A stretch of DNA of 64,000 nucleotides, from contig DF237381.1 of assembly GCA_000708835.1 (NCBI GenBank), positions 14,945-78,944 on the forward strand, in the 5' to 3' direction. A program made the position numbers and the translations under genes. Source of the DNA: Klebsormidium nitens (Eukaryota; Plantae; Klebsormidiophyceae). The notes under the pieces were generated by a model, which worked only from the letters and a program-made list of their open reading frames with translations, was not told where the DNA came from and ran no database searches. Below are positions 11,401-23,152 of the stretch, one piece after another (position 1 is the stretch's first letter; each line of letters begins with the position of its first letter).

Positions 11401-13441
11401 AAATAGCAGGGCCTTACCTGTGGGCGATGATATGCACCTTGTCCAGCTGGAACTCCGTCAGCATCTTTGTCAGGAAGTCGACGAAGTGCGCCACAGCCCA
11501 CATCGCGTTGCTCTCGTCGGCGCTGTAGCTGTCAATCGCCTGCAGGAAGCGGCTGCGGAGACGTCAGCTCCACTTCGTGCAGATCTGGGACATTATGCTT
11601 GAAGTTTGATGTGCATCTTTGTTGACCAGACCGTCAGTCAACTTGCCGTACTCTGCAAAAGGTCCTTGAAGTTCCGGATCTGTGCAAACGATCTTACACC
11701 TTACCGTCTCTGCAAATGGTCCTATACTTCTGAGGAGGTCCATAATAGTATGATGTCCGACACCGCTTGACAATTCGTTGTCAGAAGAAAGTCATCGCAA
11801 CGGAACCTGGCCCAGCATGGCCATCTATATTTGACAGCCCAATGTAAGGCAAAGCTTTCAAGCGGATTGTGGGACTCAGGAGAAGGGGGGGAATGTTTGG
11901 AACTCGTAAGCATTACAACGGGTCTTAGAACATATGCCAAATTTCGAAGACCCCAAACTTGGAACAGGGTGTTCTTTTTTCATTCCAATATTAGAGCAGC
12001 GGAACAGACTTTCTTCGCATCTGGGACGCCTTTCAAAGCTGCGGGCATGACGCATTAAAGTGTAACAGAGAGCTCGTAAAAAGGGCCTGGGTTGAGTGCT
12101 TTGCATTCGGACCGTTCCCAGCTGTTTGATCACTTGGGCTTCTCTTTGACAGCATCTGAGCTTACATACGCAGTGACTCTCGTTTGCAAGGAATGCTGGC
12201 AGGTCAGGACTTAGAATCTTTGATTCCTCTGTACAGGGAACTGAAGAGAGACGCCGGTGACTCAGCTCACGGTATCCAGTGGTGGCAAATTGAGCGTGTC
12301 CCGGGGGCACAAACAGAAAGTACGGACAGAAATGCCGTGTTAACTTCATTTGTCCTGGCAGGAAAGACAGGAAAAGTCCATGGTTGGAAGGGAGGGGGGC
12401 CCAAAGAAAGGAGATGGAATCCAGAGAAATGAGAAGCAAGCAAAAGAGGAAGCGTGATTAGGTACTACGCACCTGATAGGACGGCCAGCTGAACAAAAAC
12501 AGCGGCGCATCCTCCTGGATCTTATATGCGCAGAGCGCCATTTTCCTCGCCGCCGACCCAAACCGAAAGTTGAACCCGTGCACGTAAACAACCGCCTCGC
12601 TTTTCCCCTTGCTCCATCCGCGCTGGCCCCCCCGCCTCTGTCCCCTCAGAGTCTTATCCACATGCCGCCGATTCTGCGCCATGTGGTGTTTCAAATATTC
12701 CTGGCTCATTCCCATGCACTTGGTTATCATTAACCCGTCTCGAACCCCGGTCTTGGCCGTCCGAGCCCGATCCCAAAACCACCCAAAAGGGAGATCGGAA
12801 CGCGTCTGAGCAACGTTGTCAATGTCGGGAATGGAAACGCGCACAAGGCCCACGGAGACTTCGTCCGCTCGCTCAATGCCGTAAAAGGCTTCCGTGAGAT
12901 TATTCCCACTGGGCTGCCGGCAGGTGCCGTACCAGATGGGCACGTCCATGAAACCGGCGGCGTCTCCGGCCCCCTCGGAAGGACGCGACTGCCCTCGTTG
13001 CAGGTAATCATGCAGGCGATGAAAGCTCGTCAACAGATCTTCCTTCGATTTCCAGTCGACGGGAAGCGCCACATTTGCGACGTCCACTTTCTCCAGCAGA
13101 AAGCTGACGGTCTCTGCCGCTTCCGGGGAATTTTTGCAGTGCGCAATTACCGCGTCCGCAGCTTCACTCAGCTGAGCAGAGGTCACAGTTTGCAGGGGGG
13201 CTGTCGTGACTGGCTCCAAAATGGTCAGCAGCCCCCCGGCAAACTCATCCCAGCTGTCGCTGAGGTCGCGCCTGATGTCAGCGATGTGGATCAGAATGCT
13301 GAAAACAGCGGCGCTTTGGAGGAGGTGTTCTTGGTCCTGAGAACCAGAAGCTGTCTTTGTTAAGCGCAGGGTTTTGAGGAGGTTGGCGGGGATCAGGCCC
13401 GAAGGCCTGATGGTTCCGATGACTGAGCTAAATGAGTTCAT
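8398..13441 (-). CDS. DUF900-type alpha/beta hydrolase (esterase/lipase-like) with an unrecognised N-terminal region. Exons 13441-12473, 11539-11418, 10719-10569, 9467-9360, 8760-8398.
   Basis: Motifs appear in family order: VPIWYGTCR, VVYVHGFN, FSWPS, HIIAHSMG (nucleophile elbow, split by an intron), LVLAAPD, VTIYASSADQAL, VDLVDAT..LLGHGY. All four introns are GT-AG and phase-consistent. Confidence 0.88.
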
Positions 13442-16400
13442 TCTGACCTATTAGTTGGTCAACCTCTGCTGATTTGTTTCTGGTGAGCTTTCCAGCTCTT
13501 GACCTCTGCTTAGCTGCTTTTCTACAATGCTGCATTCCATCTGAACAGCATTCCTTGGAGTCGTGCTTTCGCTTCCCTGTGCCTTGTGGAAAACCTCACG
13601 TGTTTCAGACAGGCAACGCGGGGGCCTTGTTGCACTTCTCCCTATAGCTCAAACAAAGAATGGTCACCCAAGCAAGAGCTGATGAGTGAGTTTGGCTAAC
13701 CCAGAATCGCTACCCGGAAAGTAGGATACAATTGTAGTGAAGCACAGATGAAATGACCCCGTGGCTCCCACGCAAAACAAAAGGTGAGCAAGAATTGCAG
13801 ACGCCATACCACCTTCTCCTGTGGCTCACTCTGAAGGAATGCCAGCTCCAAGAGGGCTCCAAGGGTCGGCCAAGCCTACTATTTAATAGGCATGCATGTG
13901 CATTGTGCATCATTCAGCTTTGAAGTGTCCCTCCGGTTTTCAGGGCTGGAATGATGGGGCTGAAAATCACACGCGCAACTTGCAACCATGATTGAATCAG
14001 ATTGATCCCCACTATGCGACCTCTCCATGGCCCTGGGGGGGGTAGCTACCTATAATCCACAAGTTACGTGTACGGCCGGTCTCGGATGGTACAAGGGCTT
14101 AGGTTAGATACTGGTTTGGCTTGGGTTAGATCAGGTTAGATGACCTTCAACTGCTTGTTGCCTGCCCATCCGGGTTATCTCGATGTACCTTGATTTCAGG
14201 GTTTCTCGCTCTCCCAATAACTTACCCTATGCCTTTTTCACTCTCCATGACACCCCCGTATGATGCACATTGCAGTGACATTGGGGGAGGAAGAGTTGCT
14301 TCGTGATTGAGAGATTGTGCAAATCATGACGGCATTTAATGCAACCGGCCAGGTGGTGTCCTCATTATCATGATGGGTAGTTCAGGCTACAGAGTCGCAA
14401 TAGATACACCCACCCTAAAATTTAGAAAGTGTTCAACAACCAGAATCCATAGTAATCATCAGGGAGACCTACCTATTCCTATACCTACTGTATACATATT
14501 GGATCTGAAGCATTCCTTTCAAATGAGCTCGTGCTTCAGAAGTTGGAATCTCAGCTGGTAAGTTAGCGCCGCAAAAGTTTTCACTTGAGCACTAGTCCTA
14601 CCCTTCACTAACATTGCCGGGCAGAAGATCTAGAGTCCGTCGCACTCTCGCTTCTTTTTCACAACCTCGCGCTGAAAAGGAAATCTCAAGGATGTTTGAG
14701 ACCTCTTTGAGAAACCTTTTCCGTTTGCCCACAGCTCATGAGCTGGCTGAAATTGCAGATGCTTGAGGGAAAAGGAAGCTACATTTACTGGCGTGTGGCG
14801 TGTGTTCCAAGAAGGTAAGCTCGTCAGAGCTTGTCATCATTAGTAGCTCTGCGTGTTTTAGGCTCGGATGTACGTGTGTCACATCTTAAACGTAGAACAT
14901 GCTGTTCTCAGCACAACCTGCAAAGTCCACTCTTTTGTTGCGCTCCTTACACATTTTGCACTCCAGCCCAAATATGTCTCTCCATATTGAGGTGGATCAC
15001 CAGTTCAGAGAGCAGCCAGAAAAAATGCAGGCCCCTTTCCTCACTTGCCGCTGAGCGCGGCAAGCATAGTTCTTTCAAGCTTCAAATCCTGCGGTGTCAA
15101 ACCTCAAGTTTCTGTATACTGTAAAGGCAGACACTTCACTCTTTGAGAAAGACATTTCTGCCGTTCCATCAGGAGCTTTGAAGTTTTTGGGGTGGAAAGC
15201 GTGCGCGCTGTTCAATGCCAGAAGTTTGGAGCGTGCGACAGTTTGCAGATTGTCCTGTGTTAATGGTCATCTGTCTTCGACCTTAGCAACAGCAGAGAGC
15301 TGTCAGCTTCAGTGATGAGATGAGAAGAGCGCTCTGCTTGACTGTGTTTGTTCACTGAGTCTCTGGTGCCAAGGTTGCTGCTACCATGTTTTCAATAAGT
15401 GTGTTCACAGTAGCTGTTTCCATATATAGACTTTCTGCAAAGCATTGGTGAAGGCAAACCCTCTCTTATAATGATTAGGCAGAACCATATCAACGTTGGG
15501 CTTCAGTCCGGGGTGAAGCAAACCCCGGAGCTTTTACAACACAAGAAGTACATGGTTTCTTTTCAGTGCTGCCCTCCAATACTCTTGAGCTTGCCACGTC
15601 GTGTGTCATCATAAGTGGTTACTTTCTCTCTGCCTAACCATGCCCCTAATGCTTCTCCTTGCAGCTGCAACGTGCTTTGTCTCGGGCTTTCCGGCAAGCC
15701 CCGTTTGCTTACAGCCCATGAAGAAATTTCCGCTTTAAGGATACTGATTGCTGGGCAGATCTCGATGAGCAGAGGTTAAGCTGCCAGCAAGCTAGGGAGG
15801 ACAATATTACAGGACCAGAGTTTTCTGAGTCAAGAGGTTTCAAGTTGCGGGCTCTACACAGAGGGGCTTCACAGACTTGACAAACCCAGGCAATTCTTTC
15901 AACTCCTAAGCTTGCTTCTCAGACTTTCTTCCTTCACGAGGACTTACATTAGGCTCACTCAGCCTACGTGCCAGCTCAAAAGGGCTCCGACTGCTGCTCA
16001 AGGAGCCCTCTGAATCTTGTCAGCACCTAGCCAAGAAGTTCTCATAACGTGTTGGGTTTACAAGAAGCTGGGTTTACAAGATGCTGCTGAGCAGCCAAAA
16101 GCCAGGTCTTTGTGACTCTGGCTGAAAACCATTGCAGAAAGGCTTGCTCTGTCAAAGTGGAACCGCAGCTTTGTGTAGTGTCCAATTGAAGTTTTACAGT
16201 TGGCCACCCTTCATTCCTGTGGGGGCTGATTCTTTCAAGCCAGATGGCTTGTTGATTCTACGTAGTCTCATCCCACCACATTCCTTTTCGTGTTGATACA
16301 CTCCAACTTGGTATAATCTGTTACAGTCCCTTTGCACTGGTTTCCTCACAGAGTGGATACTTTTCCACCTTAAACTGCTACACCTTCAATTAGAATGATG

Positions 16401-16502
16401 CGTAATTAGCAATTGACATTCCTGCTTTCTCCCTCCAGGATGAGTAGCTTCAAGCAAAGCAAGAGTAGCTGACTGACAGTTGCATTTTCCGCCTTTCTGC
16501 AG

Positions 16503-19500
16503 ATGGATATCTTCAAGCTGAACCCGTTTGCAGTGAAACCCAAGCCGTGCTGGGCGCTCTCCATTCCACTATCTCTGGTGCTAACCACGGCGGTGGGCCT
16601 TGGGACAGCCTTTTTCATTATTGCTGTGAGTCAACAGAACATTAATCTTCTAACCATCTGTCCCGTCTTCTTTTTGAGTTGTTAAGTTTTCGCCCCACCT
16701 TGGGGACCAAAAGCCCAAACGCACATTTGTTCCAATCACTCCGCCCACCTTCCTACCTACTTTTGGCAACGATATCGGGGCCTGGAATAGCGTTTCCATG
16801 GGGATCGTGGAGCCACGTGAGATCCATCAAGTCTGACGCCCTGTCCCTTTCTCTTGTCTTCAATGGGAGTCCTGTCGTTTGACTCGTAATGAGAGTCCTG
16901 AGCTTAGGGTGTCAGGTAGAGTGGTCGTACAGCTCACCAAAGGTTGAACTAAATTTCGCAGCCGTCCTTGGCGGTTCATTGGCGAAGGGTCCAAGCTTGA
17001 AAAGCTGCAAAGTTGCATTCCTTTGCAAAGTCGGCAGCTCCTCAGTGTAAACGCGCCGCCCTCTTGAATCATCGCTTAGGGCTGAAAGCTTCTTCCTTCC
17101 GCTCACCAACAATGAGCTATTACAAGCTGTTGCCTCATGAGAACAGAGTCGTGCCAAGGTTTCTATTCAGAGATTTCGAACCGTTGAATCAGCAATTAAC
17201 TGTCATTCTGATCGAGATTTGGAAGACTGAGGTCGAGATAATATGACCTCATGTTCGGTCTTCTGTTTGCTCAGACCCCATGTCTGTCTATATTAAGCGA
17301 ACTAGTCTCCTTCTTTCGTCCTTCGACTGTCGGCAAGCAAACAGTGTAAAGCTTCATTACGACAGTTCATACATTCAGCGGTGTGTTCCAAAAAGTAGTT
17401 AAAGTCATTTAACGCTTGAATTCTCACTCTGTCTTGCAGAACTTAACCCTTCTTACCGAGCCCACGGTAACCGAGAAAATCAAGGCGGCCGCGCCGCCAT
17501 TACCGTTCATCTACTTGTGCCCCAGCAAGCGGCCGTACACAATGTCAGGACCAATCTACGTGGGCTGCGGAGATAACATCTCCGATACTGCATACCCCCT
17601 GCAAAGAACTCCCGACGGCATCAGCACCCGCGCCGGGGGGCTGTGCACCCTCCAGCAGCTTGTGACGATCAAGGTGCGCTCCCGGGTGATGCATTTGCTG
17701 ATGTCATCAGGCGTAAGGTTGTGTGCTCTGACAAGGGCAGGTTGTTTTGGTGGCTTCGGAGGACGTGAGCTCTGCTGACGTCACCTGAGGCCATGTTGCG
17801 GTTCAGTGCATATTCGTCGCTTCAAAGGTTGCGTTTTGAAGCAGGGCTTCGGAGCCATTTGATTCGTTTTGGAGCGATTTTCAACCCAGCGATGAAACGT
17901 AATGACGAAAGACGTCTAATCTGTAGAATCCTCGTATTTGTGTCCCATCGAAGCACTCAGGTTCCGGCGCGAAACCAAGACACTACTTGCTTGTGACCGA
18001 TCATAGACCGAGACGTGGAGCAGCCTGGATGACACTCAGTGCGTGGTCTGAGAAGGACCCCGACACTCTTACGTTGACACGCTCTTGTTCGTGTGTCGAC
18101 AGATAATGGACCGGGACGTGGGCGGCCCGGTTGACACTCAGTGCGTGGTGTTCCAGCACATCGTAGCGAACAAGGACATCCCCTGGAAGACGCAGGTTTA
18201 CATGATGCTCTCGCGTAACCAATTTACGGCAGGGCTCTCGACGACGACTCTCGACACCGTTCCAAGTAAGCCGCACGATCACTTGGTGAAACCGTTGGCT
18301 TTGCAGTCATCTTACCCGTTTGCTTCTTTCCTGGGTCGTTTCAAGAAACCAAATTGATGGCCGCGGTTGGCAGGACGACGCTCGATGCCGCGCCAAGGAT
18401 GCGACACCAGACTTTGTGTTCGCTCAGTTCGTCTGCCATGCCGGTTCTTGAAAACAATCGAGTCTACGACAGGGCTCTCGACAAAGGCATTAAGCAACAT
18501 TTGTAAGTACATCCCACTGCATTTGCTGAATCCCCGCGTTTGCATTGTCGTCGAAGCCAACAGATCACCAGCCAGTCGCGGTCGAGGGTGAACACCATCA
18601 GATGCTACCCATAAATCTCTTGTTTTTCAGTAGGTTTGAACACCTCTCTCTCGGTTTACCGCCCTGGCAAATAGTCGACGTCTTCACTCTGAAAGCCAAT
18701 CAAGGCTTCCTGCAAAAATGTTTCCCGAGATCCAAAGTCTAACAGCTTGCGAAGCGAAAACTTTACCGCGAAAAGAAGTAGGTCTACTTATGTGCTTATC
18801 CATTTATTCCTTCTCTACCAGTGGGTTCAGACGAGTGACATTCAATCAACGGCTCCGGAAAACAAACAACACGTTCAGTCAGGCAAGCAACCAGGGCTAA
18901 TGCTGCTCTCGTCAGACTCTCAAACAAGTAACCAACCAGCAAGTTTTATTTAGCAGATTTCCCCCATTTTCAGTCGGTCGTATCGTGTGCTAACCCGTTC
19001 TCTCCTTCTCTTCCAGTGGGTTTGAACTGTTAGAAGTATTTGAGCACTGCCACTCGGGCCACACTGGCGCCAGTGTGGCCCGAGTGGCAGTGCGCAAATA
19101 CTTCTAACAAAAATGCGGTGACCGGACTGGGTTCGATTCCCAGCGAGAACGCGAAGTTTTGCGGCTGGCTGCGCAAAAAGGTTGCCCAGGGGTGGCGTAA
19201 AAAGTGAGCTCAGGAAAAGGGCCGCTTTCGAAGTCCTGAGGGGATGGCGTCAGTTACTTCCTTGGTCGGAAGGAGAGGCTCGACTGGAATACTTCTAACA
19301 TGAACGCCTACCTCTCAGTCAACGACACCTTCAGCCTGGAAGCCAACCAGGGCTTTATGCGAAACGTGGTCAAAATAAACAAGGTCAACGGCTCGCAGGA
19401 TTGAATAACCCCGCTTTTAAAAGTAGGTTTTGTTTTGCGCTAACCCACCCTTTTGTCCTCTTGCAGTGGGTTTAAACGCCTACCTCTCGGTTTACGGCCC

Positions 19501-21299
19501 TGGCAACATTAACGACACCTTCAGCCTGGAAGCGAATCAGGGTTTCCTGCGAAACGTGGTCGAGATAAACAAGGTCAACGGCCTGCAGAAGTACGAGGAG
19601 GGCGCATTCTTCCTCCCGGTTTCGGTGCTGTCCGCGTTCAAGGTGCAGAAGATCAGCCGCATCTTCCAGGTGCATTCGGCGCGGTCGCTAAGAACCTTCG
19701 CCAAGGGAAGCAAGCCGGTAAGGAGTTGAATAGTAACTCGGCTTCTTGTATCAGACCTGCCGTTACGTTACCGTTACAAGTTTCTTGGTTTCGGTGCTGT
19801 CCGCGTTCAAGCTTGAGAAGATGAGCCGCATCTTCCAGGTGCATTCGGTGCGGTTGTTGCGGGCCTTTGCCGAGGAGTGAGGAGACGGGTGGTAGTTGAG
19901 TTTTTCACTTCAGTCTTGCCGTCACTTTGTTGCTGTCCAAGCTTCCCAGTCGTTACCACCTTTCGCCAAGGGAGGCAAGCCGGCAAGGTAACCGGTCGTG
20001 AACGAGCTGTCTGATACAGACTTGCCGTTACTGTACTGTTCAACTTTTTCAAACGCTGCGAGCCTTTCGCCAAGGCAGGCAACCCGGCAAGGGACCCGGG
20101 AACCTTCTAGAAACCGAGGTTTTCTAGTTTTAGCTATTTAGGCTAGCTTCAACTTTACCGGTTTATTGAAGATCTTTCACTACCAGCCTTGGACCAGCGG
20201 AACTTGTTCTCGAAAGAGGTGCTCGAACCGCAGTTGACTCCAGACAGGGAGAAATTAATCGTGCGGTCAGGAAGAGATCTGTCTGGAGAGTGGTTGGAGA
20301 TCGATGCAGCCAGACGTGCAATCAACCGTTGAACATAAAAACCCAAACGGGTTGACCAATTTCATTCTCCCTTGTTGGAGTGCTGCCGAAAGCCGCCCTA
20401 AGTCAGGTTGAACACGTGTCCTGAAAAGCCTCACGGTTGCGATGGTCTTTCCCACGTTCTGCAGAAGCTTATTGGGCTCACCGGCGTCGACGGTTCGACC
20501 ACCGCGCCGCTGCCCAACCTAGTTAGGGCTTTTGCAGCTGCATCTGAAATTGTTACCACCTCTTTGCAGATCATCAAGTTCACCGGCGTCGACGGCTCGA
20601 CCAAAGCGCCCCTGCCCAACCTAGTTACAAAGATTGCATCCTTGAATTACTGCGGGCGGGCTTATCTAAGAAGTTGAAGTTATTGCTGTCTGCAGATTAT
20701 CAAGTTCACCGGCGTTGACGTCTCGACCAACGCGCCGCTGCCCAGCCTAGTTCCCGGCCTCCTCCGACTGCATTTGAAATCGTTACCACCTCCTTGCAGA
20801 TCATCCCGGCGTCGACGGCTCCACCAACGCGCCCCTGCCCAACCTAGTTATGAAGGTGCCCATATTTAATAAACCTGGGCGAATCTTTAAAGACCGTTAT
20901 TGCTGTCCGCAGATCATCAGATTCACCGGCGTCGACGGCTCGACTAACGCGCCTCTGCCCAACCTAGTTCCCGGCCTCATCCGGCTGCACGGCGTCGCGG
21001 CCGCGGACGCGGACGACTTCGAAGCCGCGGCCGCGTCGATCAGCATCAGTTTCGACGAAGTTAAGTACACCGAGATCAACCAGGTCGGGGTTATCCTGCT
21101 GCTCGTGGGGATCATCCCGGTGTATCTAGGCATGGCGGCGAAACTGTGGGCGTGGGTCTTCGCGCCGTTTCCCAAGCCGGGCCCTGCTCCAAGCCAGCAC
21201 TTTTTGGGGTACCTCCGGAAAGCCCCCGAGGAGCCGAAGAAGGACGAGGAAGCGGTGCCGGCGGGGGACGAGATGACGGAACAGTTTATGAAGAAGTAA
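16503..21299 (+). CDS. ~369-aa protein with two transmembrane helices flanking a ~270-aa loop; function unassigned, DEG/ENaC-like motif placement (see findings). Exons 16503-16625, 17440-17673, 18103-18265, 19467-19669, 20913-21299.
   Basis: Phase-consistent GT-AG splicing (0, 0, 1, 0). Hydrophobic segments WALSIPLSLVLTTAVGLGTAFFIIA and VGVILLLVGIIPVYLGMAAKLWAWVFAPF. The first ATG follows an acceptor (ttctgcag|atg), so an upstream exon may exist. Confidence 0.75.
19028..19300. mobile_element. 273-bp insertion with TG...CA ends, 13-bp terminal inverted repeats, 5-bp TSD and an internal tRNA-derived segment (solo-LTR-like or MITE/SINE hybrid)
   Basis: Ends are tgttagaagtatt and aatacttctaaca. 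TSD tgaac lies at 19023-19027 and 19301-19305. Removing the element restores a decayed copy of exon 4 (tgggtttgaac-gcctacctctc versus tgggtttaaacgcctacctctc). Confidence 0.85.
19069..19143 (+). other. tRNA-Arg(UCU)-like head with Pol III A and B boxes; not a functional tRNA
   Basis: A-box-like tggcccgagtgg at 19076-19087, anticodon-loop-like cttctaa, and a perfect T-arm ctggg-ttcgatt-cccag at 19127-19143. The anticodon and acceptor stems do not pair. Confidence 0.65.
20440..20912 (+). repeat. Four decayed tandem copies of the intron-tail plus exon-5 start of the two-TM gene
   Basis: gcag|..tcaccggcgtcgacgg.tcgacc..cgcgcc.ctgcccaacctagtt starts at about 20465, 20570, 20696 and 20800; the true exon starts at 20913. 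Confidence 0.9.
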
Positions 21300-23152
21300 G
21301 AGGAGCTGCGCAGTCGTTGGTCTGCCGTTCAGAACATAACGGAGAGTGTTGGAAACGTTACGTTGCTATGGTGCTATGTTGCTATGTTGTTGAAAGCAAG
21401 TCGACGCGTCTTCAAGGAGGTTTCCGGCAGGTAGTACTAGGGAAAAGAGAGGTGATGAAGCGGTGAAGGCAGCTCACGGGCCGCTGATTTGGGTAGGCTC
21501 CGCTGCTGCCTTCGTTGGAGAGTTTCCTGAAAATCAATATTCTCGCAAGGAGAAGGCTAAAGACAGGAACATTCCTCGGAGATGAAGACCCGTTAACGGA
21601 GCCGATATGAAGGACTTGGATCAGTTGAAGACCCTGCAGTCCCGCTTTTTAGCTGTAGATATAAGCTCGCTCGCAACCCGTTGCGTCGTAGATATTGCGT
21701 GGGGACCGCTTACTTATTAGGGGCATCAGGTGGGTATAGTCACCTGAAAAAGTTGCACGGCGGTCAACCCGCTAGGAGGAACAGATTGGCACAACCGCTA
21801 GAAAAATATTTGACCAGTCGGAAGCAGTGACACCAGCGGAGAAGTTCAAAAGAGCAGCGCCGGCGCGCAATGCAGAGTAGAAAGAACTTAGCAGAAGGCA
21901 TTTGAGCAAGAACGAGGAAAAAGGTCGGAACCGGTTTCGCGGTTACTAGACGAGCTCGAGACAGCCTTCTTGGATTGAACATCAAATGAGCCTGCTTAGA
22001 ACTCTCAAACGACAGTTGCGGTTTCAGGTCAGGGTACCATACGAGTGCCTCAGAGGGGCCGCAGTCAGACTCTCTCAGTTGGACACCGTAACTTATTGCC
22101 CCAGCGGCGCATGTGGAGGTCGATCTTCAGATTCCGACTTGAAATACAATCGCGGCCACGACTCGGAGTGGCGGAAGGATCGACTCTGCATCGCTACTCC
22201 ATGATCTGTACATCTTAATTTCATACCACATGCAATAACCAGTCAACCCAAGCAGCATGGAGATGTGCAGGTGTGCGACTCTGGCGAACATGCGGTTCAC
22301 TCTTGGCTGATTGTATGATGCGTGAATTTTGAGATGGCCGTGGTCAAGCTGACCCGGCATCATCAAATTCTACCATGGCCGGCCGCGCAGCACGGCCCGA
22401 CCCGGGGGCCCGCGGGCCCGCGATCAATCAGAGTCACGCATTCACTTTTGCGGCAACTTGCTAACTTGCTCAGACAATATGGTCACCATATATGCCCCAC
22501 GCAACGCCGGCCCTACATTAGTCTGTCGGACGGTACATTAGTTCTAGATGCATGAAAGCTGACACATGACGGTCTGAGACTGACTCACACTGAAAAGTCG
22601 GGAACCATGATCATTCTGAGTCCGATCCCACTCCGGCTCTGGCCGGGCGGCCAGCCTGGTGGACCCGTATATACGTGCCGACAGCAGGGTAGATGTGCAA
22701 CTGAGTATATTGTACTAAGAACTAATGATCGATTGCAAAGTGGTCGAGCGGATCCGATTCTCGAGGCAGGCTCAGCCCGCGCGCTCGATAGCGCGGTTGG
22801 CGGGCTTTATCTTTAAGTGACGAACTATAGTTAGTTATGGCCTACTAGCCAGGTTGCAATCATCATGCACAGTACGGTACCCAATTATAGCTAAAGTGGG
22901 CTGCAATGATGGCTATATGCCATCTCATGGAAGGTACATATACGTGTCCGCGTCCACTCAGTGTTCTGTCGTAAGAAGGAGGCCGAGAGCTCATGATGAG
23001 CTCTGGCATGAATTGCCGTGGAACAAAGCAAAAGCCTTCGATCAGAAATGTGTACTAAGTTAAGGTTTGGCATCCGATCTACAATACACTCATATACTAC
23101 AAATAGTAAGTTGCACAAAGCAAACATATTGCAATCGGTTCAACGTCTCCGA

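Follow-up and report, generated by a model that had tools for sequence, protein, structure and literature searches.

A two-transmembrane protein family of Klebsormidium with a predicted PAC/DEG-ENaC-type subunit fold

The window analysed here is a 64,000-nucleotide stretch of the Klebsormidium nitens genome (GenBank assembly GCA_000708835.1, contig DF237381.1, positions 14,945 to 78,944 of the forward strand), and all positions below are counted from its first nucleotide. It carries the gene KFL_004320050, which was found from spliced RNA contigs to consist of five coding exons with an open reading frame (ORF) of 1,158 nucleotides encoding 385 amino acids. The gene is expressed and spliced, encodes a protein with two transmembrane segments (TM1 and TM2), is under purifying selection, and is homologous to a second K. 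nitens gene, KFL_003460070. The family formed by these genes is new and, judged by sequence, confined to Klebsormidium-like algae. Modelling of the paralogue partly supports a subunit fold of the kind found in animal channels of the PAC (proton-activated chloride) and DEG/ENaC (acid-sensing, ASIC/ENaC) types, with PAC the closest. The family is not a demonstrable member of either PF15122 (PAC/TMEM206) or PF00858 (ASC, DEG/ENaC). Neither family profile was matched, and the hallmarks of DEG/ENaC are missing. The proteins are therefore placed here in a family of their own, new but with a subunit architecture that is already known. On the predicted fold, the protein may be the first PAC/ASIC-type channel candidate in the plant lineage.

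The gene product and its relatives

RNA contigs from four public runs were placed on positions 16400-21400 of the window. Four GT..AG joints (16625 to 17440, 17673 to 18103, 18265 to 19467, and 19717 to 20913) were identical in three runs from two studies. Contigs lacking these four introns can come only from RNA, which demonstrates transcription and splicing of the gene. The public protein for the locus, 'hypothetical protein KFL_004320050 [Klebsormidium nitens]', is 459 amino acids long (P0009). A comparison of its sequence with the RNA joints places an extra exon of 159 nucleotides, found in the public model only, at 20465..20623 on the plus strand, where it adds 53 amino acids. Contig depth was zero over 20074-20908 in the four RNA runs, leaving this exon unsupported. 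Because that interval is uncovered in all four runs and 19717 is joined straight to 20913 in three, the 385-residue form is the main product.

Hydropathy of the RNA-supported 385-residue protein displayed two hydrophobic segments and no more, spanning approximately residues 17-47 and 313-340. This bears out the topology proposed in the initial annotation, which was made from the sequence by eye, namely two transmembrane segments with short tails around a loop of about 270 residues. The loop contains four Cys (residues 68, 84, 110, and 133) and three N-glycosylation sequons (N-x-S/T), and it was rightly described as lacking a Cys-rich thumb. The conserved loop Cys and the sequons suggest that the loop is extracytosolic and that both tails are cytosolic. 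The motif strings on which the annotation relied are also present as quoted. EPTVTEKIKAAAPPLPFIYLCP is encoded at 17458-17523, ISISFDEVKYTEINQ is encoded at 21039-21083, and YLGMA lies within TM2.

Relatives of the protein were sought by an exhaustive HMMER search in which the 128-residue piece encoded by exon E was compared with 1.84 billion representative proteins. There were three true matches, all from Klebsormidium or Klebsormidium-like contigs. A fourth match (P0004), an archaeal-type repeat protein, was judged spurious. Two profile word searches, one of them at E<=10, likewise returned Klebsormidium proteins only. The homologue search called for by the initial annotation thus recovered relatives in Klebsormidium-like algae and, by sequence, none beyond them. 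One relative is a full-length K. subtile protein of 382 amino acids (P0007), and its K. nitens orthologue is KFL_003460070 (P0008, 383 amino acids). KFL_004320050 aligns with P0008 at a BLASTP E-value of 1e-48, collinearly from the N-tail to beyond TM2. Three further relatives are genomic loci from Joint Genome Institute (JGI) samples (L001-L003) and have the same five-exon layout as KFL_004320050. The last, L005, is a JGI contig of 1,274 nucleotides (Ga0315919_1012732) that was the sole match when metagenome contigs were scanned with an exon-D alignment. Its positions 153-1272 code for a nearly complete protein with 71% identity to KFL_003460070, with an apparent frameshift near 1128. L005 is probably a metatranscript because it is free of introns.

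These sequences fall into three paralogue groups. Group 1 consists of KFL_004320050 and L002 (~70% identity), group 2 of L001 (~48% identity to KFL_004320050), and group 3 of P0008, P0007, L003, and L005. Two paralogues are annotated in the K. nitens genome and a third group is present in related algae. Sixty-five positions are invariant across the three groups, including all four loop Cys and residues E53, I55, P60, L62, P63, I65, Y66, C68, S301, I302, D305, and E311. TM2 contributes the invariant residues G323, P326, Y328, W336, and F340. The blocks kept across groups are E.I....P.LP[FY]IY.C, G.[IVL]Y.GC.D, IM.R....P..T.C..F, [KR][FY]EEG..FL, and the pre-TM2 block SI..D.....E. Chance likeness in a single sequence thus does not account for the motif strings, since the blocks that hold them are conserved in three paralogue groups. 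Selection on the protein is evident from a dN/dS ratio (nonsynonymous to synonymous substitution rates) of 0.14 between KFL_004320050 and its L002 orthologue over 318 codons, at a dS of ~1.5 that is near saturation.

Predicted fold and its relation to known families

The evidence for the fold comes from the paralogue P0008, which was modelled by AlphaFold2 with the family alignment (~6-8 effective sequences). In the model, a helix at residues 10-48 is followed by some 15 strands, interrupted by short helices, and then by a second helix at 301-327. The LP.IY.C block lies in beta2, which comes second among the strands that follow TM1, and the final pair of strands, immediately ahead of TM2, is made up of the SIS.DE...E block. 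The ASIC-like motifs thus take the same structural places that the initial annotation had assigned to them, with the beta11-beta12 turn lying 3-4 residues earlier than its register implied. The model predicts an ectodomain beta-core (palm/beta-ball) as in DEG/ENaC, and it also predicts the PAC arrangement of TM1, a compact beta-domain, and TM2.

Comparison of the P0008 model with known structures converges on the same channels. Foldseek returned 57 matches at E<=0.001 in the PDB. The top 20 were all PAC/TMEM206/ASOR chains (best E 1.1e-9, probability 1.00, TM-score by target 0.53), and the next ~30 were ASIC chains (E 1.8e-5 to 6e-4). An alignment that does not depend on Foldseek, run against 48,161 representative solved chains, placed PAC, ENaC, ASIC, or FaNaC-type chains in all of the first 11 positions. 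Two PAC chains led with scores of 12.3 (254 of 278 residues, model residues 12-330) and 11.9. They were followed by ENaC (10.5 and 10.3), PDPNaC1 (10.3), ASIC1 (10.1), ASIC5 (9.8), an ENaC delta (SCNN1D) trimer (9.6), BRTNaC1 (9.2), and two FaNaC chains (both 9.1). An ESM Atlas fold search with the same model listed the TMEM206 cluster first (TM-scores 0.50/0.47, 269 residues aligned). TMEM206 was also the first structural neighbour of the Atlas single-sequence ESM model of P0008 (pLDDT, the predicted local distance difference test, 0.61). Language-model features lie near TMEM206 as well (0.85 for P0008 and 0.88 for P0009). Every search made with P0008 models had PAC as its top structural match, and in three structure searches PAC surpassed every DEG/ENaC chain. 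The structure comparison proposed in the initial annotation therefore favoured its general idea, with PAC and ASIC/ENaC chains at the top.

Two other families were considered and rejected. P2X (PF00864) had no Pfam match, and no P2X chain appeared in the top 50 of the 48,161 chains or in the top 50 Foldseek matches. CDC50/LEM3 (PF03381), which the initial annotation had named in advance as a match that would tell against its reading, had no Pfam match at E<=10 and no chain among the structural matches. None of the contrary outcomes set out in the initial annotation was observed.

A number of results weigh against the PAC/DEG-ENaC-type reading, and they concern the model, the sequence, and the pore in turn. 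The P0008 model is of low confidence. Its mean pLDDT is 58.6, its predicted template modelling score (pTM) is 0.52, no residue reaches 90, and of the five models, three collapsed at scores of about 37. A model of KFL_004320050 itself (P0009:22-459, which includes the unsupported 53-residue insert) gave a pLDDT of 39 and a pTM of 0.22. Because this model is unusable, the fold is transferred to KFL_004320050 by homology to P0008. TM-scores to known channels are just 0.35-0.53. One possibility is that the fold call is an artefact of low-confidence prediction, so that the protein would be an unrelated, lineage-specific two-transmembrane protein whose likeness to ASIC motifs arose by chance. The thin alignment behind the model, the failure of the protein's own model, and the uniformly negative sequence tests all speak for such an artefact; the consistent rank of PAC in the structure searches and the conservation of the motif blocks in three paralogue groups have been given above. 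This explanation is considered unlikely.

The sequence tests gave no support to any known family. Pfam was searched at E<=10 with the exon pieces, P0007, P0008, P0009, and 21 family rows, and it returned no family, only transmembrane noise (DUF4064, FtsX, and DUF2545). Neither PF00858 nor PF15122 was matched in these searches. Furthermore, the family profile found no PAC, ASIC, ENaC, P2X, or CDC50 chain at E<=10 among all PDB sequences, and phmmer searches of the exon pieces against the same sequences returned nothing relevant. The by-eye alignment to ASIC consequently lacks statistical support, because Pfam, phmmer, and family-profile searches were all negative.

Could the protein nevertheless be a true, strongly diverged DEG/ENaC member by descent, as the initial annotation had it? 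A His-Gly (HG) motif before TM1, a thumb rich in Cys with several disulfides, and a TM2 selectivity filter of the form G/S-x-S are hallmarks of DEG/ENaC channels. The N-tail of KFL_004320050, MDIFKLNPFAVKPKPCW, has no HG motif. The thumb disulfides are missing, and in place of the G/S-x-S filter, TM2 reads G330-M-A in KFL_004320050, G-Y-A in group 2, and S-Y-I in group 3. The Klebsormidium ectodomain is ~100-150 residues smaller than that of DEG/ENaC/ASIC proteins (6AVE, 2QTS, 6BQN, 6WTH, and 8ON7), has no thumb or finger elaborations, and contains 4 Cys versus ~14. These absences, together with the lack of a PF00858 or profile signal in the 21 family sequences and the better match to PAC, make descent from DEG/ENaC very improbable. 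Published surveys of DEG/ENaC outside animals give only a few heterokonts and Tunicaraptor, one filasterean relative (PMC10507113). In short, the DEG/ENaC-type reading survives as topology and as a subunit fold predicted from the paralogue, and not as family membership.

How might the protein act? By analogy with the known channels, it most likely forms a trimer in which TM2 lines the pore and the ectodomain controls gating, at a probability of about 0.5. For the extracytosolic loop of ~270 residues, the predicted structure is the beta-strand core common to PAC/TMEM206 and DEG/ENaC/ASIC, whose first strand is connected to TM1 and whose last strand is connected to TM2. Subunits would assemble as a trimer, either homomeric or mixed with paralogues, and TM2 would line the central pore. 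The ectodomain would then gate the pore on an external cue such as pH, ligand, or force. A further point on the unfavourable side concerns the pore. In PAC, anions are selected by a conserved Lys, K319/K320, where TM2 meets the cytosol (PMC7904269). KFL_004320050 has a Lys near this end of TM2 (K334, present in groups 1 and 2). In group 3 the aligned residue is Leu.

A protein with the same PAC/DEG-ENaC-like fold need not be a channel, as fold alone is no proof of channel function. Alternative roles would be those of a sensor anchored in the membrane, of a protein that serves adhesion or faces the cell wall, or of a cycler between the endoplasmic reticulum (ER) and the Golgi like Erv41/Erv46. 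Erv41/Erv46/ERGIC-32 proteins (PF13850 and PF07970) are not channels. They likewise have two transmembrane segments and a beta-rich luminal domain of similar size, and their COPIIcoated_ERV/ERGIC_N clusters stand beside TMEM206 among the weaker Atlas structure matches (TM-scores 0.39-0.52), which also counts against the channel reading. Consistent with a non-channel role, no charged or polar TM2 pore residue is conserved in all three groups. However, ERGIC_N and COPIIcoated_ERV had no Pfam match to any family member at E<=10, and no Erv41 chain was among the top 50 of the 48,161 solved chains, the top 11 of which are those listed above. Erv41/46 was rejected as the family on these grounds. Moreover, TM2 is as conserved as the ectodomain and keeps its G, P, Y, W, and F in every group, which is what a pore or assembly helix would show. 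The canonical C-terminal KKxx signal is absent, as KFL_004320050 ends in FMKK and the paralogue P0008 in PAGL. A non-channel role is thus regarded as rather unlikely, if the most credible of the alternatives, and the gated trimeric pore is preferred.

Exon layout, 5' exons, and intron copies

All five coding exons lie on the plus strand. Exon A (16503..16625) contains the start codon and encodes residues 1-41, which make up the cytosolic N-tail of 16 residues and the greater part of TM1, as indicated by the joint from 16625 to 17440 in three runs, by translation, and by hydropathy. Exon B (17440..17673) encodes residues 42-119, which comprise the end of TM1 and the predicted beta1/beta2 strands according to the RNA joints, the family alignment, and the secondary structure of the P0008 model. 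It holds the E.I....P.LP[FY]IY.C block (17458-17523), the G.[IVL]Y.GC.D block, and Cys68, Cys84, and Cys110. RNA joints and the alignment likewise define exons C and D. Exon C (18103..18265) encodes residues 120-173 plus 1 nucleotide, including Cys133 and the IM.R....P..T.C..F and [DG][IV]PW blocks. Exon D (19467..19717) supplies 2 nucleotides and residues 175-257, with the G.N.Y....G, N..FL...EI, and [KR][FY]EEG..FL blocks. Exon E (20913..21299), placed by translation and by the joint from 19717 in three runs, encodes residues 258-385 and the stop codon. It begins the last part of the protein with the LP[ND].V.G....H block, followed by the predicted beta11/beta12 block (21039-21083), TM2 (21084-21161), and the C-tail. 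Coverage by RNA contigs extends the 3' untranslated region (UTR) to at least 21400.

Upstream of exon A, two alternative 5' exons, ending at 15889 and 14816, use one acceptor immediately before the ATG at 16503. The 3' end of the main 5'-UTR exon lies at 15863..15889 on the plus strand and is joined to exon A, as seen from loose ends of X1, X2, and X5 RNA contigs placed at 15863-15886. The donor of this intron reads CAG/GCAATT (15886-15895) and its acceptor CTGCAG/ATG (16500-16503), with the slash marking the exon edge. The intron is thus apparently of the GC-AG type. The alternative upstream exon, at 14759..14816 with an approximate start, is also on the plus strand and was placed by a loose end of an X5 contig at 14789-14812. 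It holds the ATG of the public model. When this exon is spliced directly to 16503, as in the RNA contig, its ATG is out of frame with the main ORF and would open a short upstream ORF. The public KFL_004320050 model starts at this ATG in the exon near 14.8 kb and passes through a 7-nucleotide micro-exon (15665-15671) to exon A. The resulting 21-residue N-terminal extension has no RNA support.

Introns 3 and 4 contain partial, degraded copies ("echoes") of exons D and E that correspond to the exon starts and ends. A tblastn search of the window with the protein located a degenerate copy of the exon D start at 19279..19398 (plus strand) and further echoes at 18630-18754, 19788-19874, and 20462-20773. 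The 53-residue insert of the public model consists of two such degenerate copies of the exon E start, and a tandem repeat with a period of 217 bp occupies 20478-20989. Low-depth, unspliced RNA contigs cover some echoes (19131-19384 and 19767-19975), and no joint uses an echo. In the interval 19023-19305, one other RNA contig, from run X9, matches positions 19062-19109 only and carries unrelated sequence on both sides.

On the minus strand, a 327-residue ORF at 12461-13441 has a weak Pfam match to DUF900 (alpha/beta hydrolase) at its C-terminal end (E 1.6e-5) and probably represents a single exon of an adjacent gene. It was the only match among the neighbouring ORFs, which offered no useful context.

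The family among known proteins

The nearest known system is PAC/TMEM206/ASOR (7JNA, 7SQF, 8FBL, and 7JI3). The two are of similar size (~350-385 amino acids) and share a short N-tail, TM1, a compact ectodomain of ~250-270 residues without a Cys-rich thumb, TM2, and a short C-tail. They differ in that sequence and profile similarity between them is not detectable, and in gene number. The Klebsormidium family has paralogues, whereas TMEM206 is reported to be a single gene that occurs in vertebrates and a hemichordate only and lacks homologues beyond the deuterostomes ('no homologs in ... other kingdoms of life', PMC6663466). The likeness of PAC to ENaC/ASIC has itself been discussed as structural convergence (PMC7904269).

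Unnamed 'transmembrane protein' clusters in the Atlas, from Mucoromycota, haptophytes, and ciliates (some with PF27811, Y80K_N), are of similar length at 277-483 amino acids. The nearest language-model neighbours of the family are the Mucoromycota clusters (0.96 for P0008 and 0.93 for P0009), and haptophyte and ciliate clusters are also listed. Structure matches to these clusters have TM-scores of 0.43-0.57. The HMMER and word searches found no Mucoromycota, haptophyte, or ciliate relative. These Atlas neighbours hint at a wider, undescribed superfamily.

The papers searched contained no account of a PAC-like or DEG/ENaC-like protein from Archaeplastida. A tentative and possible view, held with less confidence than the pore mechanism, is that the subunit fold of PAC/DEG-ENaC trimeric channels goes far back in eukaryotes and did not originate in animals (with scattered protists). 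The Klebsormidium family would have kept this fold in the plant lineage, as would perhaps the unnamed clusters from Mucoromycota, haptophytes, and ciliates. KFL_004320050 would then be the first streptophyte member and a stimulus-gated trimeric channel, from a family that sequence ties to neither of the two animal families. If this is true, common descent of PAC and DEG/ENaC would be favoured over convergence. The protein offers a concrete subject for tests of trimer formation and gated ion flux, being 385 amino acids long with few Cys and with paralogues for comparison. If it is a channel, it would extend this architecture to the plant lineage and provide an outgroup for the question of shared PAC-DEG/ENaC ancestry. 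It would also be a new candidate sensor of pH, osmotic, or mechanical change in a land-dwelling alga near the transition of plants to land.

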